Source: Anaeramoeba ignava BMAN (lineage: Eukaryota; Protista; Anaeramoebae). From it: DNA of 64,000 nucleotides. Position 1 is the first letter of the stretch; each line of letters starts with the position of its first letter. The stretch spans positions 62,001-126,000 of the forward strand of contig JAPDFW010000063.1 in assembly GCA_028826165.1 (NCBI GenBank), given 5' to 3'. Below the pieces are notes generated by a model. The model saw nothing but the letters and a program-made list of their open reading frames with translations, did no database searches and was not told the origin of the DNA. This document shows positions 307 to 43,607 of the stretch, one piece after another. Both the position numbers and the translations under genes were made by a program.

Positions 307-2146
307 ATGAATGAAATTTATATTTTTTGGTCAAAATCAATTTCCAATTCTTATCAAAAATGAACCTGATAAAATAACAAAACCAATTCAATTTAAATTT
401 GAATTTGAAAATGAAAATGAAAATGAAAATGAAAATGAAAAACAAATTAAACAAATTTCATCAGGAAGATTTTCAACAATTTTTCTTTTTGAAAATGGAA
501 AAGCAATAGAATATTTAACTGAAAAAGATTCAAAACAAAATCCTGAAAAAATCCAAATTGAAAAAAATATTCAAAAAGTAACTGTTGGTGGTGAAAATGA
601 AGCTATTTTAACAAAAGAAGGAAATGTATTTGCAAAAGGAATAGATATTAATCCACAAAATACAAAAGAATTTATCAATATTTCATCATTAATTGAAGAT
701 AAAAATGATAGAATAATTAAAGATATTGTTTCTGGAGCTAGTTCAATTTACTTATTAACTTCAAATCAAAATGCCTATGGAATTGGTTCAAATGGATATG
801 GCCAACTTGGTTTTGATTCTGAAACACTTAAAAAAACAGAAAAACCAATTTTAATAATAAAAAATGTTTCTAAAATATTTTCAGGAAATTCTTCAAAAAA
901 TATTTTTCTTTTAAATTCAAATCAAGAATTATTTGGATGCGGATGGAATCAATTTGGTCAACTTGGATTAGGAGAATCAAAAAGAGAAAAAAGAGAAATT
1001 CAGAAATTAACCCAAATCCAAAATATTCCAAAAAGTAAAATAATTGATATTCAATGTGGATTATTTCATTCAATAATGCTGATCGAAAATGAAAATGAAA
1101 ATCCAAATCCAAAAAGAAAACTTTATTCATGTGGATATTCTCCATATAATGGACTTGGAACAAATACTTATGAATTTACTGAAATCAAATCATCTTTATT
1201 TGAAAATGATGATATTCTTGATTTTTCTGTTGGATTTGGACATACTTTGATTTTAACATCTAATTCAAAATTAATTGGATTTGGAGATAATTCACATGGT
1301 CAATTAGGAACTGGAAATACATCAAGAACTGATTTAATTCCAATTCAAATTGAACTTCCTAAATTAAGATTTAATGAAAATATTTCCAATTATCATATTT
1401 CTTGTGGAAATTATAGATCATTTCTTTATTATTCTCCTTTTTCTCCTTTTTCCAATCTTGAAGAAGATTTGATAAAATTATTTAAAAGAAAAGAATTTTG
1501 TAATATTTCATTTAAAACCAAAAATGGAGAAATAATTGAAGCTCATAAATTAATATTGAAATATAGATTAAATCAAAATCAAAATCAAATTGAAAAACTT
1601 CAAGAAATTATTTCAAAAAAATCAATTAAAGAATCAAATCAAATATTTGAAATGATTTATTCAAACAATTCAAAAATAAATCCAAAATTATATTCTGAAA
1701 TTAAAGAAATTATAAATTCAAATGAAAAAATAGAAGAAACAATGAAAAGAATTTATTTAAATGAAAATGAAAATGAAAAAGATTTTATAATTGAAAGAAA
1801 AGAAAAACAATATAAATTTCCCAAATTAATATTAATAATGAGAAGTGAATTATATCGAGGAATGTTTTTATCTGTAACAAAAGATAAATCAAATAAAGTT
1901 ACAGATTATAGTGAATTAAGTAATAAATCATTTCAAATATTTGAATATTGGATTTATTCAAATCATATTAAAGAAGGAATTCAAATTACACAAGAAATAA
2001 TTGAAGAAATTGAAAGAGGAATTGATTATTTTCAATTAAATCAAACAAATCCAAATTTATTTGATTTATTAATTAAAAATTTAAAAATTAAAATTAAAAT
2101 TAAAATCAAAATTAAAATTAAAATTAAAATTAAAATTAAAAATTAA
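307..2146 (+). CDS. RCC1/BLIP-II beta-propeller + tandem BTB protein, array copy 1
   Basis: RCC1 repeats (GSNGYGQLG, GCGWNQFGQLG, QCGLFHS, VGFGHTLIL, GDNSHGQLG); BTB-like segments (EFCNISF..AHKLIL; KDFII..LIMRSELYRGMFLSV). The ATG homologous to the other copies is at 307, one base out of frame with ORF 311. The C-terminus runs into the (AAAATT)n spacer. Confidence 0.9.
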
Positions 2147-2193
2147 AATTAAAATTCCAAAAATATTTTTTTCATTTTTTTTCATTTTCAAAA

Positions 2194-3969
2194 ATGAATG
2201 ATTGTTTATTTTTTGGTGATAATAAATTTCCAATTCTTATCAAAAATGAACCAGATAGAATAACAAAACCAATTCAATTTAAATTTAAATTTGAATTTGA
2301 AAATGAAAATGAAAAACAAATTAAACAAATTTCATCAGGAAATTATTCAACAATTTTCCTTTTTAAAAATGGAAAAGCAATAGAATATTTAAATAGAAAT
2401 GATTTAAATCAAAAACCTTCAAAAATCCAAATTGAAAATATTCAAAAAGTAACTGTTGGTGGTGAAAATGAAGCTATTTTAACAAAAGAAGGAAATGTAT
2501 TTGCCAAAGGATATGATATTGATTCAAAAAATTCAAAAGAATTTATCAATATTTCATCATTAATTGAAGATAAAAATGATAGAATAATTCGAAGATGTTG
2601 TTTCTGGAGTTCGTTCAATTTATTTATTAACTTCAAATCATAATGCTTATGGAATTGGTTCAAATGAATATAGTCAACTCGGTTTTAATTCTAAAAAACT
2701 TTATAACACAGAAAAACCAATTTTAATGATGAAAAATGTTTCTAAAATATTTTCAGGAATTTGTTCAAAACTTGTTTTTCTTTTAAATTCAAATCAAGAA
2801 TTATTTGGATGCGGCTTAAATGATTATAGTCAAATTGGATTAAGAAAATCAAGAAGAAAAAAAAGAGAAATTCAGAAATTAACCAAAATTAAAAATATTC
2901 CAAAAGGTAAAATAATTGATATTCAATGTGGTGGATTTCATTCAATAATGTCGATTGAAAATGAAAATCAAAATCCAAAAAGAAAACTTTATTCATGTGG
3001 AGATTATATATATAATGGACTTGGCAAAAATGAAGATACCTATAAATTTACTGAAATCAAATCATCTTTATTTGAAAATGATGATAATATTATTGAAATT
3101 TCTGTTGGATATTTCCATACTTTGATTTTAACATCTAAATCAAAATTATTAGTATTTGGAGATAATGCTTATGGTCAATTAGGAACTGGAAATACATCAA
3201 GAACTGATTTAATTCCAATTCAAATTGAACTTCCTAAATTAAGATTTAATGAAGATATTTCCAATTATCATGTTTCTTGTGGAAATTATAGATCATTTCT
3301 TTATTATTCTCCTTTTTCTCCTTTTTCCAATCTTGAAGAAGATTTGATAAAACTATTTAAAAGAAAAGAATTTTGTGATATTTCATTTAAAACCAAAAAT
3401 GGAGAAATAATTGAAGCTCATAAATTAATATTGGAATATAGATTAAAAGATCAAAATGAAATTGAAAAACTTAAAGAAATTATTTCAAAAAAATCAATTA
3501 AAGAATCAAATCAAATATTTGAAATGATTTATTCAAACAGAATAATAAATCCAAAATTATATTCTGAAATTAAAGAAATTATAAATTCCAATGAAAAAAT
3601 TGAAGAAACAATGAAAAGAATTTATTTAAATGAAAATGAAAATGTAAAAAGATTTTATAATTGAAAGAAAAGAAAAACAATATAAATTTCCTAAATTAAT
3701 ATTAATAATGAGAAGTGAATTTATATCGAGGAATGTTTTTATCTGTAACAAAAGATAAATCAAATAAAGTTACAGATTATAGTGAATTAAGTAATAAATC
3801 ATTTCAAATATTTGAATATTGGATTTATTCAAATCAAATTAAAGAAGGAATTGAAATTACACAAGAAATAATTGAAGAAATTGAAAGAGGAATTGATTAT
3901 TTTCAATTAAATCAAACAAATCCAAATTTAATTGATTTATTAATTAACAAATTTAATAATCAAAATTAA
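2194..3969 (+). CDS. RCC1-BTB array copy 2 (apparent frameshifts near 2590, 3650, 3718)
   Basis: Colinear with copy 1 across ORFs 2194-2643, 2726-3664 and 3715-3969. Confidence 0.85.
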
Positions 3970-4063
3970 AATTAAAATTAAAATCAAAATTAAAATTAAA
4001 ATTAAAATTAAAATTAAAATTAAAATTCCAAAAAACGTTTTTTCATTTTTTTTCTTTTTAAAA

Positions 4064-5840
4064 ATGAATGATTGTTTATTTTTTGGTTTAAATCAATTTC
4101 CAATTCTTATCAAAAATGAACCATTTCAATAACAAAGCCAATTAAATTTAAATTTGAAAATGAAAATGAAAATGAAAAACAAATTAAACAAATTTCATCA
4201 GGAAATTATTCAACAATTTTCCTTTTTGAAAATGGAAAAACAATGGAATATTTAAAAGAAAATTATTCAAATCAAAAACCTTCAAAAATCCAAATTGAAG
4301 AAAATATTCAAAAAGTAACTGTTGGTTCTCGAAATGAAGCTATTTTAACAATAGAAGGAAATGTATTTGCCAAAGGAAAAGATATTAATCCAAAAAATCC
4401 AAAAGAATTTATCAATATTTCATCATTAATTGAAGATAAAAATGATAGAATAATTAAAGATATTGTTTCTGGATCTAATTCAATTTACTTATTAACTTCA
4501 AATCAAAATGCTTATGGAATTGGTTCAAATGGATATGGCCAACTTGGTTTTGATTCTGAAACACTTAAAAAAACAGAAAAACCAATTTTAATGATGAAAA
4601 ATGTTTCTAAAATATTTTCAGGAAATTCTTCACTTCGTGTTTTTCTTTTAAATCCAAATCAAGAATTATTTGGATGCGGATGGAATCAATCTGGTCAACT
4701 TGGATTAAGAAAATCAAGAAAAGAAACAAAAATCCATAAATTAACCAAAATCCAAAATATCCCAAAAGGCAAAATAATTGATATTCAATGTGGGCATAGT
4801 CATTCAATAATGCTTATTGAAGAAGATGATGAAAATGAAAATCCAAAAAGAAAACTTTATTCATGTGGAGTTGGTTTTTATAATGGACTTGGCAAAAATA
4901 AAGATACTTATGAATTTACTGAAATCAAATCATCTTTATTTGAAAATGATGATAATATTCTTGATTTTTCTGTTGGATATTCCCATACTTTGATTTTAAC
5001 ATCTAAAGGAAAATTATTAGTATTTGGATATAATTTTTATGGTCAATTAGGAACTGGAAATACAAATGATCAATCAATTCCAATTCAAATTGAACTTCCT
5101 AAATTAAGATTTAATGAAGATATTTCTAATTATCATATTTATTGTGGATATTATAATTCATTTATTTATTATTCTCCTCCTTCCTTTTCCAATCTTGAAG
5201 AGATTTGATAAAACTATTTGAAAGAAAAGAATTTTGTGATATTTCATTTAAAACAGAAAATGGAGAAATAATTGAAGCTCATAAATTAATATTGAAATAT
5301 AGATTAAATCAAAATGAAAATCAAATTGAAAAACTTCAAGAAATTATTTCAAAAAAATCAATTAAAGAATCCAATCAAATATTTGAAATGATTTATTCAA
5401 ACAATTCCAAAATAAATCCAAAATTATATTCTGAAATTAAAGAAATTATAAATTCAAATGAAAAAATTGAAGAAACAATGAAAAGAATTTATTTAAATGA
5501 AAATGAAAATGAAAATGTAAAAGATTTTATAATTGAAAGAAAAGAAAAACAATATAAATTTCCTAAATTAATATTAATAATGAGAAGTGAATTATATCGA
5601 GGAATGTTTTTATCTGTAACAGAAGATAAATCAAATAAAGTTACAGATTATAGTGAATTAAGTAATAAATCATTTCAAATATTTGAATATTGGGTTTATT
5701 CAAATCAAATTAAAGATGAAATTCAAATTACAAAAGAAATAATTAATGAATTAAAAAGAGGAATTGATTATTTTCAATTAAATCAAACAAATCCAAATTT
5801 ATTTGATTTATTAATTAACAAATTTAAAAATCAAAATTAA
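4064..5840 (+). CDS. RCC1-BTB array copy 3 (apparent frameshifts near 4128 and 5200)
   Basis: ATGAATGATTGT start at 4064 as in copies 2, 5 and 6; ORFs 4243-5208 and 5205-5840 are colinear with copy 1. Confidence 0.85.
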
Positions 5841-6270
5841 AATTAAAATTAAAATTAAAATCAAAATCAAAATTAAAATTAAAATTAAAATTAAAATTAA
5901 AATTAAAATTAAAATTAAAATTAAAATTAAAATTAAAATTAAAATTAAAATTAAAATTAAAATCAATAATCAAAATTAAAATTAAAAATTAAAATTAAAA
6001 TTAAAATTAAAATTAAAATTAACATTAAAATTAAAATTAAAATCTTTTTTCATTTTTCAAAATCAAAATTAAAATTAAAATTTTATTTTAAAATTAAAAT
6101 TAATAATCAAAATTAAAATTAAAATCAATAATCAAAATTAAAATTAAAATTAAAAATGAAATTAAAATAAAATAAAAAAATTTTTCCTTTTTAAAAATTA
6201 AATTTGAAATGAAAACTTAAAATGAAAATGAAAATGAAAATGAAAATGAAAATGAAAATGAAAATGAAAA
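5825..6270 (+). repeat. (AAAATT/AAAATC)n hexamer spacer of the RCC1-BTB array; similar tracts at about 2085-2155, 3960-4027, 7900-8154, 9985-10241 and 12080-12153
   Basis: Directly visible hexamer microsatellite between all array copies. Confidence 0.9.
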
Positions 6271-7910
6271 ACAAATTAAACAAATTTCATCAGGAAATTA
6301 TTCAACAATTTTCCTTTTTGAAAATGGGAAAGCAATAGAATATTTAAATAGAAATGATTTAAATCAAAAACCTTCAAAAATCCAAATTGAAAATATTCAA
6401 AAAGTAACTGTTGGTTATTCAAATGAAGCTATTTTAACAAAAGAAGGAAATGTATTTGCCAAAGGAAAAGATATTTATACAAAAAATCCAAAAGAATTTA
6501 TCAATATTTCATCATTAATTAAAGATAAAAATGATAGAATAATTAAAGATATTGTTTCTGGATCTAATTCAATTTACTTATTAACTTCAAATCAAAATGC
6601 TTATGGAATTGGTTCAAATCATAATGGTCAACTTGGTTTTGATTCTGAACCACTTAAAAAAACAGAAAAACCAATTTTAATGATGAAAAATGTTTCTAAA
6701 ATATTTTCAGGAATTTGTTCAATTCATGTTTTTCTTTTAAATTCAAATCAAGAATTATTTGGATGCGGAAATAATGATTATGGTCAACTTGGATTAAGAA
6801 AATCAATAAAAAGAAACAAAAATTGATAAATTAACCAAAATCCAAAATATTCCAAAAGGCAAAATAACTGATATTCAATGTGGAGATTCTTATTCAATAA
6901 TGCTGATTGAAGATGAAAATGAAAATCCAAAAAGAAAACTTTATTCATGTGGATTTACTAAATATAATGGACTTGGCAAAAATAAAGATACTTATAAATT
7001 TACTGAAATCAAATCATCTTTATTTGAAAATAATGATAATATTATTGAAATTTCTGTTGGATATTATCATACTTTGATTTTAACATCTAATTCAAAGATG
7101 ATAGGATTTGGATATAATTACGATGGTGAATTAGGAACTGGAAATACAAAATATCAATTAATTCCTATTCAAATTGAACTTCCTAAATTAAGATTTAATG
7201 AAGATATTTCCAATTATCATATTTATTGTGGATATTACAGATCATTTCTTTATTATTCTCCTTTTTCTTTTTCCAATCTTGAAGAAGATTTGATAAAACT
7301 ATTTAAAAGAAAAGAATTTTGTGATATTTCATTTAAAACAGAAAATGGAGAAATAATTGAAGCTCATAAATTAATATTGGAATATAGATTAAATGAAAAT
7401 CAAATTGAAAAACTTAAAGAAATTATTTCAAAAAAATCAATTAAAGAATCAAATCAAATATTTGAAATGATTTATTCAAACAGAATAATAAATCCAAAAT
7501 TATATTCTGAAATTAAAGAAATTATAAATTCAAATGAAAAAATTGAAGAAACAATGAAAAGAATTTATTTAAATGAAAATGAAAATGTAAAAGATTTTAT
7601 AATTGAAAGAAAAGAAAAACAATATAAATTTCCAAAATTAATATTAATAATGAGAAGTGAATTATATCGAGGAATGTTTTTATCTGTTACAAATGATACT
7701 TCAAATAAAGTTACAGATTATAGTGAATTAAGTAATAAATCATTTCAAATATTTGAATATTGGATTTATTCAAATAAAATTAAAGAAGAAATTCAAATTA
7801 CACAAGAAATAATTAATGAATTAAAAAGAGGAATTGATTATTTCCAATTAAATCAAACAAATCCAAATTTATTTGATTTATTAATTAACAAATTTAATAA
7901 TCAAAATTAA
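6200..7910 (+). CDS. RCC1-BTB array copy 4 (5' start missing or degraded, frameshift near 6810; possibly a pseudogene)
   Basis: Homology resumes at the (GAAAAT)n tract near 6220; the MNDCLFFG..KPI start segment is absent; ORF 6900-7910 covers the last blades and the BTBs. Confidence 0.75.
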
Positions 7911-8189
7911 AATCAAAATCAAAATTAAAATCAAAATTAAAATCAAAATTAAAATCAAAATCAAAATTAAAATTAAAATTAAAATTAAAATCAAAATTTA
8001 AATTAAAATCAAAATCAAAATTTAAATCAAAATCAAAATTAAAATTAAAATTAAAATTAAAATTAAAATTAAAATCAAAATCAAAATTTAAATCAAAATC
8101 AAAATTAAAATTAAAATTAAAATTAAAATTAAAATTAAAATTAAAATTAAAATTCCAAAAATATTTTTTTCATTTTTTTCTTTTTAAAA

Positions 8190-9993
8190 ATGAATGATTG
8201 TTTATTTTTTGGTGATAATAATTATCCAATTCTTATCAAAAATGAACCAGATAAAATAACAAAACCAATTAAATTTAAATTTGAAAATGAAAATGAAAAT
8301 GAAAATGAAAATGAAAAACAAATTAAACAAATTTCAACAAGTTGGATTTCAACAATTTTCCTTTTTGAAAATGGAAAAACAATAGAATATTTAAATAAAA
8401 ATGATTCAAATCAAAATCCTTCAAAAATCCAAATTGAAAATATTCAAAAAGTAACTGTTGGTTATTCAAATGAAGCTATTTTAACAAAAGAAGGAAATGT
8501 ATTTGCCAAAGGAAAAGATATTTATACAAATAATCCAAATGAATTTATCAATATTTCATCATTAATTGAAGATAAAAATGATAGAATAATTAAAGATATT
8601 GTTTCTGGAGCCAATTCAATTTATTTATTAACTTCAAATCAAAATGCTTATGGAATTGGTTCAAATCAATATAGCCAACTTGGTTTTGATTCTGAAACAC
8701 TTCCAAAAACAGAAAAACCAATTTTAATGATGAAAAATGTTTCTAAAATATTTTCAGGAGATACTTCAAGATCTGTTTTTCTTTTAAATTCAAATCAAGA
8801 ATTATTTGGGTGCGGATGGAATCAATCTGGTAAACTTGGATTAGGAAAATCAAGAAGAAAAAAAAGAGAAATTGATAAATTAACCAAAATTAAAAATATT
8901 CCAAAAGGTAAAATAATCGATATTAAATGTGGACATAGTCATTCAATAATGCTGATTGAAGATGAAAATGAAAATCCAAAAAGAAAACTTTATTCATGTG
9001 GAGTTGGGTTTTATAATGGACTTGGCAAAATGCTTGAAAATACTTATGAATTTACTGAAATCAAATCATCTTTATTTGAAAATGATAATATTATTGAAAT
9101 TTCTGTTGGAGAAATTCATACTTTGATTTTAACTTCCAAAGGGAAATTAATTGGATTTGGACATAATTATTATGGTCAATTAGGAACTGGAGATAGAGCA
9201 TTTAAATCAATTCCAATTCAAATTGAACTTCCTAAATTAAGATTTAATGAAGATATTTCTAATTATCATATTTCTTGTGGAAGTAATAGATCATTTCTTT
9301 ATTATTCTCCTCCTTTTTTTTCCAATCTTGAAGAAGATTTGATAAAATTATTTAGAAGAAAAGAATTTTGTAATATTTCATTTAAAACCGAAAATGGAGA
9401 AATAATTGAAGCTCATAAATTAATATTGGAATATAGATTAAATCAAAATGAAATTGAAATTGAAAATCAAAATGAAATTGAAAAACTTAAAGAAATTATT
9501 TCAAAAAAATCAATTAAAGAATCAAATCAAATATTTGAAATGATTTATTCAAACAATTCCAAAATAAATCCAAAATTATATTCTGAAATTAAAGAAATTA
9601 TAAATTCAAATGAAAAAATTGAAGAAACAATGAAAAGAATTTATTTAAATGAAAATGAAAATGAAAATGAAAAAGATTTTATTATTGAAAGAAAAGAAAA
9701 ACAATATAAATTTCCCAAATTAATATTAATAATGAGAAGTGAATTATATCGAGGAATGTTTTTATCTGTAACAAAAGATAAATCAAATAAAGTTACAGAT
9801 TATAGTGAATTAAGTAATAAATCATTTCAAATATTTGAATATTGGATTTATTCAAATCAAATCAAAGATGAAATTCAAATTACACAAGAAATTATTAATG
9901 AATTAAAAAGAGGAATTGATTATTTTCCAATTAAATCAAACAAATCCAAATTTATTTGATTTATTAATTAAAAAATTTAATAATCAAAATTAA
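8190..9993 (+). CDS. RCC1-BTB array copy 5 (one late frameshift near 9927)
   Basis: 589-aa ORF 8190-9959; the homologous stop (NQN*) is at 9991-9993. Confidence 0.9.
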
Positions 9994-10277
9994 AATTAAA
10001 ATCAAAATCAAAATTAAAATCAAAATCAAAATTAAAATCAAAATCAAAATTAAAATTAAAATTAAAATTAAAATTAAAATTAAAATTAAAATTAAAATTA
10101 AAATTTAAAATCAAAAATTAAAATTAAAATCAAAATTAAAATTAAAATTAAAATCAAAATTCAAAATTAAAATTAAAATTAAAATTAAAATTAAAATTAA
10201 AAATTAAAATTAAAATTAAAATTAAAATTAAAATTAAAATTCCAAAAATTATTTTTTTCATTTTTTTCTTTTTAAAA

Positions 10278-12088
10278 ATGAATGATTGTTTATTTTTTGG
10301 TGATAATAATTATCCAATTCTTATCAAAAATGAACCAGATAAAATAACAAAACCAATTAAATTTAAATTTGAAAATGAAAATGAAAATGAAAATGAAAAT
10401 GAAAATGAAAATGAAAATGAAAATGAAAAACAAATTAAACAAATTTCATCAAGTTGGATTTCAACAATTTTCCTTTTTAAAAATGGAAAAACAATAGAAT
10501 ATTTAAGAGATTCAAAACAAAAACCTTCAAAAATCCAAATTGAAAATATTCAAAAAGTAACTGTTGGTTATTCAAACGAAGCTATTTTAACAAAAGAAGG
10601 AAATGTATTTGCCAAAGGAAAAGATATTTATACAAATAATCCAAAAGAATTTATCAATATTTCATCATTAATTGAAGATAAAAATGATAGAATAATTGAA
10701 GATATTGTTTCTGGAGCTTATTCAATTTACTTATTAGCTTCAAATCAAAATGCTTATGGAATTGGTTCAAATTATTCTGGCCAACTTGGTTTTGATTCTG
10801 AAACACTTAAAAAAACAGAAAAACCTATTTTAATAATGAAAAATGTTTCTAAAATATTTTCAGGAAATACTTCAGCTTTTGTTTTTCTTTTAAATTCAAA
10901 TCAAGAATTATTTGGGTGCGGATGGAATCAATCTGGTCAACTTGGATTAAGAAAATCAATAAAAGAAACAGAAATCCATAAATTAACCAAAATCCAAAAT
11001 ATCCCAAAAGGTAAAATAACTGATATTCAATGTGGGCATAGTCATTCAATAATGCTTATTGAAGAAGATGATGAAAATCAAAATCCAAAAAGAAAACTTT
11101 ATTCATGTGGAGTTGGTTTTTATAATGGACTTGGCAAAAATAAAGATACTTATGAATTTACTGAAATTAAATCATCTTTATTTGAAAATGATGATGATAA
11201 TATTCTTGATTTTTCTGTTGGATATTCCCATACTTTGATTTTAACTTCTAATTCAAAACTAATAGTATTTGGATATAATTATTATGGTCAATTAGGAACT
11301 GGAGATACAAATGATCAATCAATTCCAATTCAAATTGAACTTCCTAAATTAAGATTTAATGAAGATATTTCCAATTATCATATTTATTGTGGATATTATA
11401 ATTCATTTATTTATTATTCTCCTCCTTCCTTTTCCAATCTTGAAGAAGATTTGATAAAACTATTTGAAAGAAAAGAATTTTGTGATATTTCATTTAAAAC
11501 CAGAAAATGAAGAAATAATTGAAGCTCATAAATTAATATTGAAATATAGATTAAATCAAAATGAAAATCAAATTGAAAAACTTCAAGAAATTATTTCAAA
11601 AAAATCAATTAAAGAATCAAATCAAATATTTGAAATTATTTATTCAAACAATTCCAAAATAAATCCAAAATTATATTCTGAAATTAAAGAAATTATAAAT
11701 TCAAATGAAAAAATTAGAAGAAACAATGAAAAGAATTTATTTAAATGAAAATGAAAATGAAAATGAAAAAGATTTTATTATTGAAAGAAAAGAAAAACAA
11801 TATAAATTTCCAAAATTAATATTAATAATGAGAAGTGAATTATATCGAGGAATGTTTTTATCTGTAACAAATGATAAATCAAATAAAGTTACAGATTATA
11901 GTGAATTAAGTAATAAATCATTTCAAATATTTGAATATTGGATTTATTCAAATCAAATTAAAAATGAAATTCAAATTACAAAAGAAATAATTGAAGAACT
12001 TAAAATAGGAATTGATTATTTTCAATTAAATCAAACAAATCCAAATTTATTTGATTTATTAATTAAAAAATTTAATAATCAAAATTAA
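10278..12088 (+). CDS. RCC1-BTB array copy 6 (apparent frameshifts near 11500 and 11715)
   Basis: ORFs 10278-11510, 11464-11748 and 11705-12088 are colinear with the other copies. Confidence 0.85.
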
Positions 12089-12153
12089 AATTAAAATCAA
12101 AATTAAAATTAAAAATCAAAATTAAAATCAAAATTAAAATCAAAATTAAAATC

Positions 12154-12219
12154 AAAGAGGAATTGATTATTTTCAATTAAATCAAACATATCCAAATTTA
12201 TTTGATTTATTAATTAAAA
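12154..12219 (+). pseudogene. About 65-nt remnant of an RCC1-BTB 3' end (RGIDYFQLNQTYPNLFDLLIK)
   Basis: Near-identical to the last codons of the array genes; lies after the hexamer spacer. Confidence 0.8.
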
Positions 12220-12250: not shown

Positions 12251-13429
12251 TCAAAAGCATTTTCTATTAATAAAAATAGGACCAAATTCTTCATATTCTT
12301 CTTTTGAAATCCACATATCTTTGAAATTTAAAATGGAGACTAAAATAGATCCTCCAATCCAAGAAGAATATTTTCTTTCAGGAGAAGAAATAATTTTAAT
12401 ATCAGAATCAGAATGATTTAATTTATAAATTTCCTTTTGGATTCTATATTCAATTCCAGGAATCATTGATGAACCTCCTGATAAAATAATATTTTGATAA
12501 AGATCTGTTTTCATTTCATCACTACATTTCATAATTGAATCATAAATCATTTGATGAATTCCTTTTTCTTCTCTTTCAATCAAATGCGGATTAAATAAAG
12601 CTTCACAACATTTAAATCTTTCATTTCCAATTTGGATAATATCTTGTTCAGGTAATTCATAATCTTTTTGAACTGAAGAAATTGATTGTTTTGAAAATTG
12701 CATTTCTTCATCAAAATCATAAGCAACATAACCAAGTTTTTCTTTTATATCATTAACCATTTCAATTTCTCGACTTGTAAAGAATTGATTTCCTTTTTCA
12801 TTGAGCATATTGACTAAATATTCAGTTAGATCTTTTCCTGCCAAATTTTGTTTTATAATTGCATGATTTAAAGCAAACATTTCATAAACAGGAACAACAC
12901 TTGAAAAACCATCTCCAATGTGAACAACAATTCCACTTTTTCTTCCTGATTGATAAAGTGATAAAACTGATTGATTTGCAAGATAAAGAGCTGGAACATC
13001 AAATGTTTCAAACATAATTTGGATTGTTTTTTCTCTGTTCAATTTTGGATTTAAAGGTGGTTCAGTTAATAAAACAGGATGCTCTTCAGGAGCAACTCTT
13101 AATTCATTATAAAAACTATGAAACCATATTTTTTCAATATTGTCCCAATCTGTTATTATTCCATTTTGAACTGGATATCTCATCATTAATATTCCCCTTT
13201 TCTTTTTTGCTTCTTCTCCAATATAAGAATCTCGAATATTCATTCCAACTAAAATTGAATGAGGAGATCTTATCCTTCCTACTATTGTTTCAAATGCTAT
13301 TTTTGGTTCATCTTCTCCTGCAAATCCTACTTTTGTTAAATAAGATCCATTATCAATAATTACTGTTTGAAATGGTTCTTGATTTGAAAAGTTTTCATCA
13401 TTTAATTTTAAAGGAAAATTTATTTCCAT
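12251..13429 (-). CDS. Divergent actin / actin-related protein, intronless
   Basis: IIDNGS..KVGFAGEDEP, YIGEEAKKKRGIL, WDNIEKIWFHSFYNELRVAPEEHPVLLTEPPLNPK, IGNERFKCCEALF, LSGGSSM, PERKYSSWIGGSIL, RKCF end. Confidence 0.95.
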   Translation of the reverse strand: MEINFPLKLNDENFSNQEPFQTVIIDNGSYLTKVGFAGEDEPKIAFETIVGRIRSPHSILVGMNIRDSYIGEEAKKKRGILMMRYPVQNGIITDWDNIEKIWFHSFYNELRVAPEEHPVLLTEPPLNPKLNREKTIQIMFETFDVPALYLANQSVLSLYQSGRKSGIVVHIGDGFSSVVPVYEMFALNHAIIKQNLAGKDLTEYLVNMLNEKGNQFFTSREIEMVNDIKEKLGYVAYDFDEEMQFSKQSISSVQKDYELPEQDIIQIGNERFKCCEALFNPHLIEREEKGIHQMIYDSIMKCSDEMKTDLYQNIILSGGSSMIPGIEYRIQKEIYKLNHSDSDIKIISSPERKYSSWIGGSILVSILNFKDMWISKEEYEEFGPIFINRKCF

Positions 13430-16211: not shown

Positions 16212-19200
16212 TCATTTTGATTTTGATTTTGATTTTGATTTTGATTTTTCTTTTTCTTTCTTTTCTTTTTCTTCTTTTTCTTTTTCTTCAATAAAAAAAA
16301 TCAAATCACCTTTCCAATCAGAAACAACATTATCCAAATTAGTAAGAATTTGATCTCTTTTCGAAAAAAGAAAAGAAATCACAGCATCACGAAGTTTGAC
16401 TACTTGATAAGAAATAGCAAGATCAAACAATTCAAAAGCATTTTGCTGATTCAAAGAATTGACGAGAATTGAAACACAACGCTGCTGGAGTTTAGCAGCA
16501 CTGAAAAGTTGGTAGTATTCATCTGCATCAATTAAATCAACAGCAACATCTTTTTCTGAAATATGGGCAACGGAGTCTGTATAAAGAAAACGAAGAAGTG
16601 ATTCAATTGATTTGACAGTTCTTCCACTAAAATCAGGAGCAGAATTCGAAGAGTCTTCAACAGATTCAAACATATTGCGATAGAGACCACTTCTAGCCGC
16701 GAGAATAAACTTGTGCACAGGCACAGAAACGTTCCCGACAAGGATGATGAAGTCTTTCGACTCGTTATCAAGATATAAACTTTCGAGATCTTGACTAAAA
16801 GCATCGGTAGTTGCGAGGGTTTCCCCAATCTCACGTGAATGGACAATATGCTTGTATCCATGGACACCGAAGATTCTGAGAAGCTCTGCAAGCTGCTGTT
16901 GATGCTCCTCCGCGCGAAGCTCACAGATACCTGAGTAGATAAACTGGAAAAATGAATCCAAAACGGAGGAGTGAAAATGAGACAATCGATTCCTGATTGC
17001 GTCCTCAATTCCCTTGCTGAGCTGCACCACTTTACGGGCAGTTAGATCGACGCTCTGGTTTTCCTCAATGGCAATGCGCGTGTCGGATTCCTGACGGATA
17101 AGCTCGTAGGGTTTTGTAAGGAAACTGAGATCGGGTGTGATCATGCGGATACTGAAGAGTTTCCATAACACACCAAACTCTTTCTTGTTAAGAGAAGTCA
17201 CTTTGAAATCGTAGAATTTTTCCCCTTGATTCGAGAAGGCAAAGTTTTTCAACTCAAAACAGATGCCAGGCTCAAACTCCATGATGTAAACATCATCGTA
17301 AAAAACCTCATTTGATTTTGTTCCCGCAAAAAGAACCAAAAAAGATTCGAATTGCCCAATGAAGAAATCATCCCTACACGAAGGCGGGTCTTGAGATGGG
17401 ATTTTCCGCCATTGATTGGTGATCAAATCACAGGCGAAGACATCATTACTGTTTGTCCTTGAGTCTCTATTCAGTCCTCCAAAAATGACATGCAAGTTAT
17501 TTTGCATGATTGCGCCGTGGCTTTCTATAGGCTTAGTGAATATCGCCCAACGTATTGATTTCTAGCCACTTGTTTGTCCTCAAATCAAAACACCACAAAT
17601 CATTTAAATCTTTAGCTCTTGTTTGACCGCCAAAAATGAACATTTTATCTTGAGAAATGACAGCTGTATGACTTGTTCTTGCTTGAGGCCATGGACTTGA
17701 ATCCTCGCTTGTTATTTCCTTCCATGTCTGTTTTGCGAAGTCGAATATCCACAGATCGTTAAAATATGTCGATCCAAAAAAACGGTATTTCCATCCGGCA
17801 AAAACTACCATTGCATTTTTATAAACAACTGCAGTGTGATAATCTCTTGGTTGCGGTATTTTTATCTGCTCATCCTCGCTGCTCTTCCGATACTCGACCG
17901 CCTGCCATTCTTCGCTTTCTAGATCATAGAAATACATGTCTTCTCGATCTGCAAGTCGTCCACTTTCTTTATTTAAACCCCCATATATATACATACGCCC
18001 TTGAAATAATACCGTCGTATTCCCCCAGCGCGTATTTGGTTGTACCCCAAGTTGTTTTCTTTTTGTCCATTCAAGTGTTTGTAAATTAAGTGTCCACATA
18101 TCATTCCAAAAATCTGGTGCGGATGAGAAAAATCCCCCAAATACCCATAAATTGTTGTTATAAATTACACAAGATGGTTTTGCTCTTCCTCCTGGTGTTT
18201 TTCCTTTAAATTCGATTTTTTGCCACGAATAAAGTTCATGAGCTTTTTATTTATTTAATTTATTTAGAAATTTATTTAGAAATTTATTTATAAATTTATT
18301 TAGAAATTTATTTATAAATTTATTTATAATTTTATTTATAATTTAATTTATAATTTAATTTATAATTTAATTTATAATTTAATTTATAATTTAATTTATA
18401 ATTTTATTTATAATTTTATTTATAAATTTATTTATAATTTTATTTATAATTTAATTTATATTTTTATTTATAATTTAATTTATTATTTTATTTATAATTT
18501 TATTTATAATTTAATTTATAATTTTATTTATAATTTTATTTATAATTTTATTTATAATTTTATTTATAATTTAATTTATAATTTTATTTATAATTTTATT
18601 TATAATTTTATTTATAATTTTATTTATATTTTATTTATAATTTTATTTATATTTTAATTTTAATTTATAATTTTATTTATAATTTGATTTATAATTTTAT
18701 TTATAATTTTTATTTTTAATTTATTTATAATTTTATTTATAATTTTATTTATAATTTATTTATAATTTTTATTTATAATTTAATTTTATAATTTAATTTA
18801 TTTAATTTATAATTTTATTTATAATTTTATTTATAATTTTATTTATAATTTTTTTATTTATAATTTTATTTATAATTTTTATTTATAATTTTATTTATAA
18901 TTTTATTTATAATTTTGTTTTTATTTATAATTTTATTTATAATTTATTTATAATTTATAATTTTATTTTATTTTATTTTTAATTTATATTTTTTATTTTA
19001 TAATTTTATTTATAATTTTATTTATAATTTTTTTATTTATAATTTTATTTATAATTTTATTTTTAATTTTATTTATAATTTAATTTATAATTTTATTTAT
19101 AATTTTATTTATAATTTTATTTATAATTTTATTTATATTTTTATTTATATTTTATTTATAGTTTTTTTTATTTATAATTTTTATTTATAATTTTATTTAT

Positions 19201-21404: not shown

Positions 21405-24400
21405 TTAATATCTTTTTCCAGATTTCAAACGTTGAATCTCAGTTGATAAATTAGAATTTTCACTTAATTGATAATAAGATTCAGCATCAAGTAATTCATT
21501 AATAACGGAATTATCCAAATCATTATCCAATTTATCGAAATATAAATATCTAACTAAAGCATTAACAGTTTTAAATTGTTTTCCACTGTAATCATTAACT
21601 TTATTTGAATCATCATTAACACTTAAAAACATTCCTCGATATAAATCACTTCTTGCCATTAAAATTATCTTGTGAACCTTAATTGGTTTACTTTCTGAAA
21701 TAATTGTAAAATCTTTTGAGTCTTCATTATGATATAAAGCTTCTAAATCATGTTTTAAATTTTCTATTCCATTGATTGAATCAAATTGATTTTGTCCCAT
21801 TTCTCGTATCATTTCTTGTATTGTTCGTAAATGAAATGATACTCCTGTATAAACCCACTCAAAGAAATTGTCCACATCTTCGTGTTTTTTGTAACGGAAA
21901 AATCCATTATATGCTTGAATATCTTTGATTCTTAATCGGAAATTTACAAATTGTGTGTGAATTGGAATTTTCCCTCCTAATGTTGCGATTTCTAAATCAC
22001 AGTTTTCATGTCGAAGATAAAGTTGATCTAGATCTTTTATTAATGATTTTTGTCTAAAAAGGTTCTATTTTTTAATTTATATTTTAATATTAATTTTAAT
22101 ATTAATTTTAATTTTAATTTTAATTTTAATTTTTAATTTTAATTTTTAATTTTAATTTTAATTTTAATTTTAATTTTAATTTTAATTTTAATTTTAATTT
22201 TAATTTTAATTTTAATTTTAATTTCAATTTTTGATTTTTAATTTTAATTTTAATTTTAATTTTAATTTTAATTTTAATTTTAATATTAATTTTAATATTA
22301 ATTTTAATTTTAATATTAATTTTAATTTTAATTTAAATTTTAATATTAATTTTAATTTTAATTTTAATTTTAATTTTGATTTTAATTTTGATTTAAATTT
22401 TAATTTTGATTTTAATTTTAAAATTAATTTTATTTATAATTTAATTTTAATTTTAATTTTGATATAAATTTTAATTTTGATTTTAATTTGTACTGAAATA
22501 TCATATTCAAAAATCTTTTTTGTTGTTGTTCCAAGATATAATCTTTGTTTTGTTGCACCAACTGCCCAAATCTTAACTTCTGCTTCAAATTTATGAAGAC
22601 ATTTTCCAGTCTAATTTTTTTCAAAAATAATAAAAATTAAATATAAAAATTAAATATAAAAATTAAATATAAAAATTAAATATAAAAATTAAATATAAAA
22701 ATTAAATATAAAAATTAAAATGAAATTAAATCAACTTTTAAATCCCAAGCAAATCCAGTTCCACCATCTCCACCAGTAAATAAAATATTATTATAAATAT
22801 GTGAAGAAATAATTGGTTGTTTATGCCCTTCCCATTTTTCTAATTCTTTTCCAGCCTAATAAATTAATATTAATTTTGATTTTAATTTTAATTTTAATTT
22901 TTAATTTTAAATTTAATTTTAAATTTTAATTTTGATTTTGATTTTGATTTTAATTTTAAATTTATTACATTAATATCCCATTTTTTAATTGAACAATCTT
23001 TTGAGCAAGTTATCATTTTTCCTTCATACATTTCAATACACCAAACTCCAAGACTATGACATTTAATTGTTCTATTTAATCTAAGTCCACTCTTTTTAAA
23101 TTTTAAATGAATTTTGAATTTAAATGAATTTTAAATTTAAATCAATTTTAAATTTAAATCAATTTTGAATTTAAATCAATTTTGAATTTAAATCAATTTT
23201 AAATTTTAAATCAATTTTGAATTTAAATCAATTTTAAATTTAAATCAATTTTAAATTTAAATCAATTTTGAATTTAAATCAATTTTGAATTTAAATCAAT
23301 TTTGAATTTAAAATGAATTTTGAATTTAAATCAATTTTGAATTTAAATCAATTTTGAATTTAAATCAATTTTGAATTTAAATCAATTTTAAATTAATACA
23401 TTAAGATTCCATTCTTTCACATTTCCATCAGAAAATCCTGAATAAAGCATATCATTAAAAATTTCTAAAGACCAAACTCTACCTGCATTTTTTTGTTTGC
23501 TAATGTAACTCAATCCATCTTTTTTCTATTTTTTTTTCATAATTTTAATATTGAATTTAATTTTGATTTTGATTTAATTTTGATTTTAATTTTAATTTTG
23601 ATTTTGATTTTGATTTTTTTTAGATTTTGATTTTGATTTTGAGTTTTGATTTTGATTTTGATTTTGATTTTAATTTTAATTTTAAATTGATTTTAAATTT
23701 TCAAAATTAATAACTACAAAATTATATTCTCTAATATAAGTATCCTTTCCTCCAGTATAAAATTTATTATTATGAATAACAAAAGTAAAAATATAACCAT
23801 CCCAATCTCCTTTAAAAGACCAAATCAATTCACCATTCTAAATAAAAAGAAAATCAAAAAAGAAAAAAAATGAATATAATTTTTCCAACTTTTTTTTTAT
23901 GAATTGAATATAATAAAAAAATACTTGTGCATTAAAGCATCTTATATCAGAACCAGAAGAATATAAATCACCAAGATGAGTTTTAAGATAGAAAATATAA
24001 CTAGGGGTTTCTTTTGTCCAAACTTTTATAGAATCCTTTTAATTTATTTAATTTTTATATTAAATTTTATTTAAATTTTATTTGAATTTTATATTTAAAT
24101 TTTATTTAAATTTTATATTTAAATTTTATTTAAATTTTATTTAAATTTTATATTTGAATTTTGATATATTTGAATTTTATATTTAAATTTTATTTAAATT
24201 TTATTTAAATTTTTATTTAAATTTTATTTAAATTTTATTTAAATTTTACATATTTTTTTTAAATTTTAAATTATATTTGAATTTATATTTGAATTTTATT
24301 TTAAATATTTAAATTTTATATTTAAATTTGAATTTTATATTTGAATTATATTTTGAATTATATTTTGAATTTTATTTGAATTTTATATTTAAATTATATT

Positions 24401-41864: not shown

Positions 41865-43607
41865 TTAAATGAAATAAGTTTCAAGTTCATCAACAACCCA
41901 TGAAGTATAAGAACCAGCTAAATAACTTTTAGCTTCATTTGTTCCATAAGTAATTCCATTAGGTAGATTATAACTATAACCAAAATTTGAACCACCAGGT
42001 TGTAAATTAGATTCTAAATAAAAATCACCAGTATAACCATTATTATATTCACCAAATAATGGACCATAACTTAAATTAGAACAAATTGCACGACCTTTGC
42101 CATTATATGTAAACTTTGCAGGTATTCTATCTCCTTTATCATTTCTTAATGAAAAAATAAATGCACTTGAGTCTTTAATGTCTCCTTTATCTCCATTAAA
42201 TCCAACTTGAGTAAAACCTCCAAAAATAAAATTTTGTATTGTTTTGATAATAACTAATGTTTTTCCTTTCCCATCAACTGCTTTATGCCAATTTTGAGGA
42301 GAAAATCCATCTCTTTTTGCTGAAAATCCTTTTTTCATTTTAGAAAAAAAATCATTATCATTTATCCATTCTTGTAATTTCTTAACATATTCAATATCTT
42401 GAACAATTTCTGAATCTGAAAATTGAGGAAAATTCTTTTTGATTTCTTCCAATTTCTTTTGGATTTCTTCAAATTCTTTTTCATATTTATCAAAAACAGG
42501 TTTCATTTTCTCGATTTCTTTCTTCCATTTCTCTTCAATTTCAATTTTCATTTGTTGATTTTCTTTCTCTTTGTTTTCAATTTCTTTCTTCCATTTCTCT
42601 TCAATTTCTTTGTTTTTATTTTCAATTTCTTTGTTTTTATCCTCAATTTCTTTGTTTTTATTCTCAATTTCCTTTTGATTCTTTTCAATTTCTTTATCTT
42701 TATCTTCAATTTCAATTTTCATTTGTTGATTTTCTTTTTGATTATCTTGAATAACTTTGTTTTGAATATCAACTAAAAAAGATTTGGGAAAAAAATCAAA
42801 TTGTTTTAATTTATCAAAATCTTGTTTTGAAATTGAATCTTTATCAAATAATGAAAAAAAAGAATGAAATAATCTTTTCTTTTCAATTCCTTTTTCTTTT
42901 TCTTTTTCTTTTTCTTTCTTTCCTTTTAATCTTTGATTTCTTTTTTCAATCCAATTATTTAAAAATTGAAAAAAATCAAATTGAAAAATTTCTTTTTTTT
43001 CTTGTTTAAATTGAATAAATTTGATAATTTCTTCTTTAGTTAAATTGAATAAATTTTCATTATTCTGAATTTGGGAAAAATTTTGATTTATTAATTCAAA
43101 ACATTTTATTTCAATTTCATTTGAATTTAAATTTCGATTTTGGAATAAAAATTGGAAAAAATTTGAATAATTAATTGAATTTGAAATTTTTTTTTGAATA
43201 ATTTCTTTCAATAAATTTAATTTAAAATAAATTGAAATTTCTAATAATTGAATAAGATTTTCTTGATTCTCAAAAGAAATATTTCCATAATAAATATAAC
43301 TCAAAATTGATTCCATTTCTTTTTTATTAAATTGATTTAAAGAAATAGAAAGAGATTCTTGCCTTAATGACTCATTAAAAAAAGGAGATCTTGAAGATAA
43401 AATTGATTTATGAACTTTAATTTCAAAAGGATTTGATTTATTCTCAACAAAAATTGAAAAATCTTTAAATGAATTTCCATTTAAAAGGTTTGAATAATCT
43501 TTAATTAAATTTTTTGTTACTTTTTTTTCTAAATTTTTCATTTCATTTTCATTTTCATTTTGATTTGCATTTTCAATTTGGTTATTATTATTATTATTAT
43601 TATCCAT
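41865..43607 (-). CDS. BTB-BACK / coiled-coil / TLDc protein, intronless
   Basis: FKDFSI..IKVHKSILSSRSPFF (BTB); EIENKNK heptads; AKRDGFSPQNWHKAVDGKGKTLVIIKT..FIFGGFT, AFIFSL, YGPLFG, VDELETY (TLDc). Confidence 0.92.
   Translation of the reverse strand: MDNNNNNNNQIENANQNENENEMKNLEKKVTKNLIKDYSNLLNGNSFKDFSIFVENKSNPFEIKVHKSILSSRSPFFNESLRQESLSISLNQFNKKEMESILSYIYYGNISFENQENLIQLLEISIYFKLNLLKEIIQKKISNSINYSNFFQFLFQNRNLNSNEIEIKCFELINQNFSQIQNNENLFNLTKEEIIKFIQFKQEKKEIFQFDFFQFLNNWIEKRNQRLKGKKEKEKEKEKGIEKKRLFHSFFSLFDKDSISKQDFDKLKQFDFFPKSFLVDIQNKVIQDNQKENQQMKIEIEDKDKEIEKNQKEIENKNKEIEDKNKEIENKNKEIEEKWKKEIENKEKENQQMKIEIEEKWKKEIEKMKPVFDKYEKEFEEIQKKLEEIKKNFPQFSDSEIVQDIEYVKKLQEWINDNDFFSKMKKGFSAKRDGFSPQNWHKAVDGKGKTLVIIKTIQNFIFGGFTQVGFNGDKGDIKDSSAFIFSLRNDKGDRIPAKFTYNGKGRAICSNLSYGPLFGEYNNGYTGDFYLESNLQPGGSNFGYSYNLPNGITYGTNEAKSYLAGSYTSWVVDELETYFI

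Follow-up and report, generated by a model that had tools for sequence, protein, structure and literature searches.

Short-tract exchange among tandem paralogues, together with diversifying selection, gives rise to patchwork specificity residues in plant NLR clusters and, through gene conversion, in the major histocompatibility complex (MHC). Patchwork genes are also built from paralogous segments in the variant surface glycoprotein (VSG) mosaics of trypanosomes and in chicken immunoglobulin (Ig) conversion, where transfer is somatic and runs in one direction, out of a silent archive and into a single expressed site. Here we describe a patchwork of paralogous segments in the protist Anaeramoeba ignava BMAN, in an array of six tandem genes that encode an RCC1-like propeller followed by a BTB region. 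The array lies in a window of 64,000 nucleotides (C64:62001-126000) of the 147-contig, 42,843,398-base assembly that was searched. Our preferred reading, to which we assign a probability of about 0.7, is that the array reflects untargeted ectopic conversion and unequal crossover among paralogues, with diversifying selection acting on what is probably a repertoire of cullin adaptors.

The animal gene RCBTB1 encodes a putative substrate adaptor for CUL3 that contains two BTB domains (PMC4974088). RCBTB1, RCBTB2 and IBTK-like adaptors resemble the array proteins in having a seven-bladed RCC1-like domain and then a BTB region. However, RCBTB1 and RCBTB2 represent one or two conserved animal genes compared with more than 1,100 copies in A. 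ignava, and the hypervariable face, the family-wide exchange and the apparently degenerate first BTB are features of A. ignava. For the F-box and MATH-BTB families of nematodes and plants, positive selection in the substrate-binding domain has been described and targeting of foreign proteins proposed (Thomas 2006, as relayed in PMC4334554). In that account, these families are similar to the one described here in their many lineage-specific paralogues, diversified binding domain and conserved cullin-binding domain. As portrayed there, they differ in that the A. ignava binder is an RCC1 propeller, that the host is a unicellular anaerobe and that the A. ignava copies, being about 91% identical in DNA, behave as a single recombining pool and not as old birth-death clades.

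In the hnwd WD40 NLR genes of Podospora (het-d/het-e), a few residues per blade are positively selected and exchange between members is constant (PMC1805685). The selected residues are likewise situated on the interaction face of a beta-propeller and reshuffled between genes. By contrast, hnwd repeats are homogenized within and between 10 genes, whereas the A. ignava blades are divergent and matching positions are exchanged, and the A. ignava family has no NACHT or cell-death domain. A mosaic alone is unsurprising, because conversion and diversifying selection are known from NLR, MHC and hnwd genes, and the comparison with NLR clusters drawn in the initial annotation of this DNA was apt. The A. 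ignava family differs from the NLR and MHC systems in its scale and dispersal, and in belonging to an organism apparently without DMC1 or Spo11.

Conflicting allele sharing within the array

The eight groupings of shared loop alleles listed in the initial annotation were all present at the DNA level in the assembly. Copies 5 and 6 both carry GDNNYP (8211 and 10299) and SWIST (8340 and 10452), SGNYST is found in copies 2, 3 and 4, and copies 2 and 4 share NRNDLNQ as well as GICS (2756 and 6710). Copies 1 and 2 have GGENEA (587 and 2458), TSRTDLIP and CGNYRS (1403 and 3278) in common, SNGYGQ links copies 1 and 3, and GYSNEA occurs in each of copies 4, 5 and 6. CGHSH and CGVGFY are shared by copies 3, 5 and 6, and VGYSH, NDQSIP and CGYYNS by copies 3 and 6. 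Some details required correction: KDIYT, assigned to copies 5 and 6, was also found in copy 4, copy 4 is without its first ~28 codons, and the array extends to position 12088 rather than ending at 11450. A number of shared alleles carry little weight, being widespread in the family; GNY, for example, occurs in 5 of the 66 copies from elsewhere in the genome that, with the six array copies, make up the 72 analyzed. The claim that no single duplication tree holds the array was upheld, given that genome-unique alleles pairing copies 1 and 2, 1 and 3, and 2 and 4 (Table 1) conflict with one another.

Among the six copies, 45% of informative-site pairs were incompatible, and the pairwise homoplasy index (PHI) test gave p = 0.001, or p = 0.018 at one site per codon; PHI restricted to silent sites was mostly not significant. 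The most parsimonious single tree required 392 steps against a minimum of 304, and the incongruence length difference (ILD) test gave p = 0.0002-0.009 when codons were permuted. Array-private codons, defined by an allele present in two to five local copies and in ≤5% of outside copies, numbered 45, as opposed to 9 in random sextets (maximum 28 in 500 sextets). Only 21 of the 45 fitted one nested hierarchy. Non-nested codons numbered 23, compared with at most 18 in 240 clonal simulations that followed the maximum-likelihood tree, used fitted site rates and either did or did not include site-specific base frequencies. Silent private alleles were also in conflict (codon 207 in copies 5 and 6, codon 255 in copies 3 and 6; each in 0 of ~65 copies elsewhere), and convergent selection is therefore no explanation.

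Identical tracts between copies 1 and 3 (80 nt) and between copies 4 and 5 (113 nt) were significant in a GENECONV-like test. The first ~340 nt of copy 6 resemble copy 5 and the remainder copy 3, which is the pattern of an old unequal crossover overlaid later by loop changes. Array neighbors were slightly closer to one another than to outside copies, both in the propeller (90.3% versus 87.9%) and in the BTB region (96.4% versus 95.6%). The maximum-likelihood tree was star-like, with 86% of its length in terminal branches, and the six copies did not form one clade. Conflicting private alleles were also present in four other arrays and absent from a fifth. A copy on contig C70 (G000:C70:7573-9309) carries CGVGFYNG with the silent variant of copy 5; protein identity between these two copies is just 82%, which makes a short transfer between contigs probable. 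At another locus (L042-L043, C1:1224450-1247350), copies 15 kb apart have a 434-nt exact propeller tract in common, which makes theirs the latest exchange or duplication among the copies sampled.

Family-wide exchange and the variable propeller face

Exact matches to conserved 17-mers numbered 912, 958, 1,062 and 1,208 in the genome, which after correction for motif conservation gave a family of ~1,100-1,200 copies, or roughly 5% of the DNA; 14,837 genes are reported for this strain (PMC11550330). Copies are present on most contigs, mostly as head-to-tail arrays. A protein search returned hundreds of full-length family proteins, and the close matches among those listed were all from A. ignava. 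A literature search for Anaeramoeba and RCC1 found no paper discussing the RCC1-BTB family.

Across the 72 copies, 10 nt sufficed for linkage (r2) to drop from 0.11 to 0.025, and four gametes were observed in 90% of site pairs. At silent sites with a majority A or T, 93 of 117 were invariant, yet nine clean A/T markers were found at frequencies of 11-44%. This spread is far from Poisson (mean 2.2, variance 40), and the nine markers are therefore most likely inherited variants; markers ending in C were excluded because AT-biased mutation could make them recur. Four gametes were seen in 36 of 36 pairs of the nine markers (r2 0.024), even where two markers of the BTB half are separated by just 3-15 nt. 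Forward simulation of duplication and loss alone yielded r2 of 0.29-0.88 and ≤16% four-gamete pairs, whereas inclusion of 40-300-nt conversion tracts yielded r2 of 0.02-0.03 and 93-96% four-gamete pairs, the observed values being 0.022 and 95%. Given the unlinked silent markers, those of the BTB half included, and the match to simulation, the family behaves as one recombining pool in which exchange is short-tract, family-wide and not restricted to loops.

Segmental exchange between paralogues, as first proposed from the letters of this stretch, is thus borne out. The accompanying idea of a pool of loop alleles, with the loop as the unit of exchange, is not, since linkage is lacking family-wide between adjacent codons and between silent sites separated by 3-15 nt. 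Nor was exchange aimed at loops seen; the constant BTB half is equally shuffled, with its silent markers fully unlinked. Each loop is represented by 38-60 haplotypes among about 70 copies, from which it follows that most of the variety arises by new mutation under selection and is then recombined by exchange.

Approximately 30 codons are near-randomized. They encode the pair of residues that follows the turn Gly of every one of the seven blades, plus the x residues of the G-x-N-x-x-G loops. These codons align with the turns of UVR8 that bear Trp-233, Trp-285 and Trp-337 (the GWRHT tryptophans) and with neighboring loops. In UVR8, the tryptophan turns and loops form the dimer interface (PMC9860181), and alignment to it would place the variable codons on one propeller face. 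At 30 face codons, nonsynonymous diversity (piN) was 0.50, compared with 0.09 for other propeller codons, 0.035 for the BTB half and a silent diversity (piS) of 0.09; piN was estimated by a counting method, with a face-codon list compiled once the variability had been seen. The BTB piN/piS ratio of 0.41 indicates purifying selection. Face signatures were distinct in 119 of 120 proteins (mean identity 16%), Tyr accounted for 18% of face residues versus 5%, and the seven blades were strongly divergent from one another in the family consensus. An adenine-specific mutator resembling that of diversity-generating retroelements was considered and dismissed, as the variation affects every codon position and every base.

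The propeller spans residues 1-376 and is followed by the BTB region. Array proteins gave Pfam RCC1/WD40_RLD matches, and an AlphaFold2 model had a predicted local distance difference test score mostly above 85 across residues 1-375; Foldseek matches of the propeller included RPGR, HERC2 and RCC1 (E about 1e-23). The BTB domain was detected as Pfam PF00651 (E 1e-7 to 5e-10), with a structural match to the KBTBD4 BTB (E 5e-4). The first BTB-like half appears degenerate, as suggested by motif alone, and model confidence there is <50. RCBTB1 clusters were among the Atlas neighbors, and cullin genes are present in A. ignava. Because of the RCBTB1-like architecture, the presence of cullins and a selection pattern like that of the F-box and MATH-BTB families, a role as cullin-3 substrate adaptors recognizing varied, possibly foreign (symbiont, prey or virus) proteins is, by a modest margin, the favored prediction for the array proteins.

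Array layout and neighboring genes

Each unit consists of a ~40-nt pyrimidine-rich leader before the ATG, a coding region and an (AAAATT)n tail, and the whole 12-kb array is flanked by non-family sequence. The insertion in copy 1, spotted by eye, merges two alleles in codon 5; the frame is open from 311 and, the copy being without its stop, runs into the AAAATT repeat. In copy 2, two of the three +1 insertions (2590 and 3645) merge two family alleles. The other BTB genes of the window, with their different partner domains, represent a general BTB-adaptor expansion (Table 1).

Table 1. Positions of array units, diagnostic alleles and adjacent genes in the window
Feature	Position	Strand	Remarks
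Array	307-12088	+	six head-to-tail intronless RCC1-propeller/BTB units, ~1.8 kb each
Copy 1	307-2146	+	RCC1-like seven-bladed propeller and BTB region; 1-bp insertion near 319
Copy 2	2194-3969	+	three +1 insertions near 2590, 3645 and 3720
Copy 3	4064-5840	+	1-bp deletions near 4124 and near 5200, both in short base runs
Copy 4	6187-7910	+	start absent (~28 codons); single homopolymer frameshift near 6810
Copy 5	8190-9993	+	589 codons open; +1 base just before the normal end
Copy 6	10278-12088	+	two allele-merging insertions, near 11501 and 11716
(AAAATT)n spacer	5827-6270	+	
Similar (AAAATT)n runs, found after every copy	2084-2156, 3949-4027, 7890-8154, 9973-10241, 12068-12156		
SNGYGQ, blade-3 loop allele	788-807	+	in the whole genome, only copies 1 and 3 (4525); within the 80-nt identical tract
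TSRTDLIP allele	1320-1341	+	in the whole genome, only copies 1 and 2 (3195), even at one mismatch
NRNDLNQ allele	2389-2410	+	in the whole genome, only copies 2 and 4 (6344)
CGVGFYNG loop allele	4865-4886	+	in the whole genome, only copies 3, 5 and 6 (8998, 11107) and one copy on contig C70
113-nt tract identical in copies 4 and 5	8418-8530	+	GENECONV-like global p about 0.01
Divergent actin-family gene	12251-13429	-	adjoins array end; Pfam Actin, E 2e-123
Kelch-BTB gene	16212-18099	-	Pfam
BTB C-terminal exon	21405-21875	-	
BTB gene with probable TLDc end	41865-43607	-	

Frameshifts were found in 20 of 38 unbiased copies, together with a few real-looking long deletions; many of the annotated family frameshifts may be sequencing errors. 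Three copies at one locus (L036, C1:668500-673800) have internal deletions of 16-59 nt and up to nine frameshifts, and are probably truly decayed. One family member (P0113) is annotated with an extra Rho-type GTPase domain, representing either a real fusion or a merged gene model. The PANTHER labels used for the family (BTK-binding, RCC1 and claret) top the lateral-transfer candidates of A. flamelloides, with 16-35 genes each (PMC11550330 Supplementary Data 5C).

Proposed mechanism and alternative explanations

The direct observations are non-tree sharing, local enrichment of private alleles, family-wide linkage equilibrium, the position of the variable codons and purifying selection on the BTB half. 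Conversion would be the molecular route. Because the framework differs little between copies (DNA identity of 90% for the propeller and 96% for the BTB half), Rad51-type homologous repair would be able to copy from a paralogue, in tracts of tens to about 100-300 nt and with occasional unequal crossovers, regardless of loop borders. Such exchange would take place mostly between neighbors and less often between contigs. Point mutation and diversifying selection would hold the ~30 face codons extremely variable, and because of this exchange would surface as new loop combinations. Rad51-family genes are present in A. ignava, DMC1 has been reported absent (PMC12722695) and Spo11 is not in the family table of the genome paper (PMC11550330); a search of A. 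ignava for Spo11/TOP6A gave no match, although an intron-split, divergent gene could be missed. We infer that the process is mitotic, repair of this kind being the likelier route because DMC1 is reported absent and Spo11 was not found.

A number of points weigh against conversion and selection as the explanation. For the six copies, PHI was not significant with heavier thinning of sites, and only one of four ILD tests was significant when whole loops were permuted. Low overall r2 was dropped as proof of recombination because fitted star-tree clonal models give similar means, so that the silent-marker test alone separates exchange from a star tree, and it assumes that the markers are not hotspots. 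The 72 copies are a small sample of more than 1,100. With respect to function, the BTB half folds with low confidence in the model, and the cullin-3-binding phi-x-E motif is imperfect, the L-K-E of KBTBD4 aligning to T-(E/K)-D, with V-T-E one residue upstream. Finally, the mosaics are known here from assembly consensus alone, in which 9 of 22 isolated 1-bp insertions in the sample consist of two family alleles side by side.

This last point bears on the strongest of the alternatives, itself unlikely, in which the mosaics are largely chimeric consensus. The assembly was produced by ABruijn from R9 nanopore reads and then treated with Racon, Nanopolish and Pilon (PMC11550330), and in a 2017-era nanopore assembly such polishing could have combined the reads of two haplotypes or of paralogues that had been collapsed. 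Allele-merging insertions, five of which are in the window (near 319, 2590, 3645, 11501 and 11716), imply that some consensus columns came from mixed reads, whether through heterozygosity, segregating conversion or mis-mapping. Frameshifts of 1 bp are present in five of the six array copies, and a fragment search for independent, non-assembly sequence of the copies found none. However, the longest exact propeller tract between window copies, 128 nt, is short of a 150-nt read, and each copy retains 14-52 private bases that majority voting would erase. Shared tracts bear later changes, such as the silent variants of copy 5 in GHS and VGFY, and the best mosaic that can be built from the other 71 copies still mismatches each copy at 39-79 positions. 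The 12-kb length of the array and its non-family flanks also count against chimerism, and polishing cannot cause silent sites 3-15 nt apart to be unlinked family-wide.

A more far-reaching version of conversion and selection, in which high-rate mitotic conversion across more than 1,100 dispersed genes gives a clonal culture a steady supply of new binding-face combinations, as an intracellular, anticipatory, ubiquitin-linked repertoire that keeps symbiont or invaders in check, is improbable. If it were true, the allele-merging insertions would be sites still segregating in the sequenced culture.

Programmed or somatic conversion of the VSG or chicken-Ig type, from silent donors to expressed copies within the life of a clone, is very improbable. 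Frameshifted and 5'-truncated copies do exist, the allele-merging insertions could be segregating in culture (the merged C allele of copy 2 is in no neighbor), and the meiotic gene DMC1 is reported absent (PMC12722695), with no match to Spo11 obtained. The VSG/avian-Ig analogy of the initial annotation nevertheless needs one expression site and silent donors, whereas most copies are open (47 of 72 without a frameshift) and no acceptor mark or signal sequence beside the loops was seen. Exchange is just as complete in the constant half, and the tracts have been aged by mutation. The array thus appears to lack two defining properties of such systems, a single acceptor and loop targeting, and neither directionality, a silent archive, a single expressed site nor somatic timing was seen in A. 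ignava.

RNA-mediated exchange or dispersal, by which reverse-transcribed transcripts insert into or convert other copies, has little to recommend it. The unit is intronless, with a short leader and a simple-repeat tail, and is found on most contigs; several 5'-truncated copies and 3'-only fragments occur, and the corrected 3' motif count is ~10% above the 5' count (1,220 versus 1,090). Against this, arrays are mostly head-to-tail, local sharing of private alleles needs proximity, there is no poly(A) tail and the 3' excess is small. Last, one duplication tree with recurrent mutation and convergent selection at hypervariable codons would draw on the very high face-codon rates, the star-like tree and the low overall r2 reproduced by clonal models, but is largely refuted, in that 20-22-nt alleles unique among more than 1,100 copies recur only in neighbors and in conflicting pairs, silent private alleles conflict and simulated conflict never equals that observed.

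On the preferred reading of untargeted exchange with selection, about 7-8% of A. ignava genes appear to form one germline binder library with a constant ligase-docking tail. The array shows how such a library is renewed, exchange being so frequent that more than 1,100 dispersed paralogues act as one recombining population. The family is a naturally occurring RCC1 scaffold for binders, about 30 positions of which are free, and it makes a unicellular organism available for testing whether expanded sets of ubiquitin-ligase adaptors recognize foreign proteins, as has been suggested.

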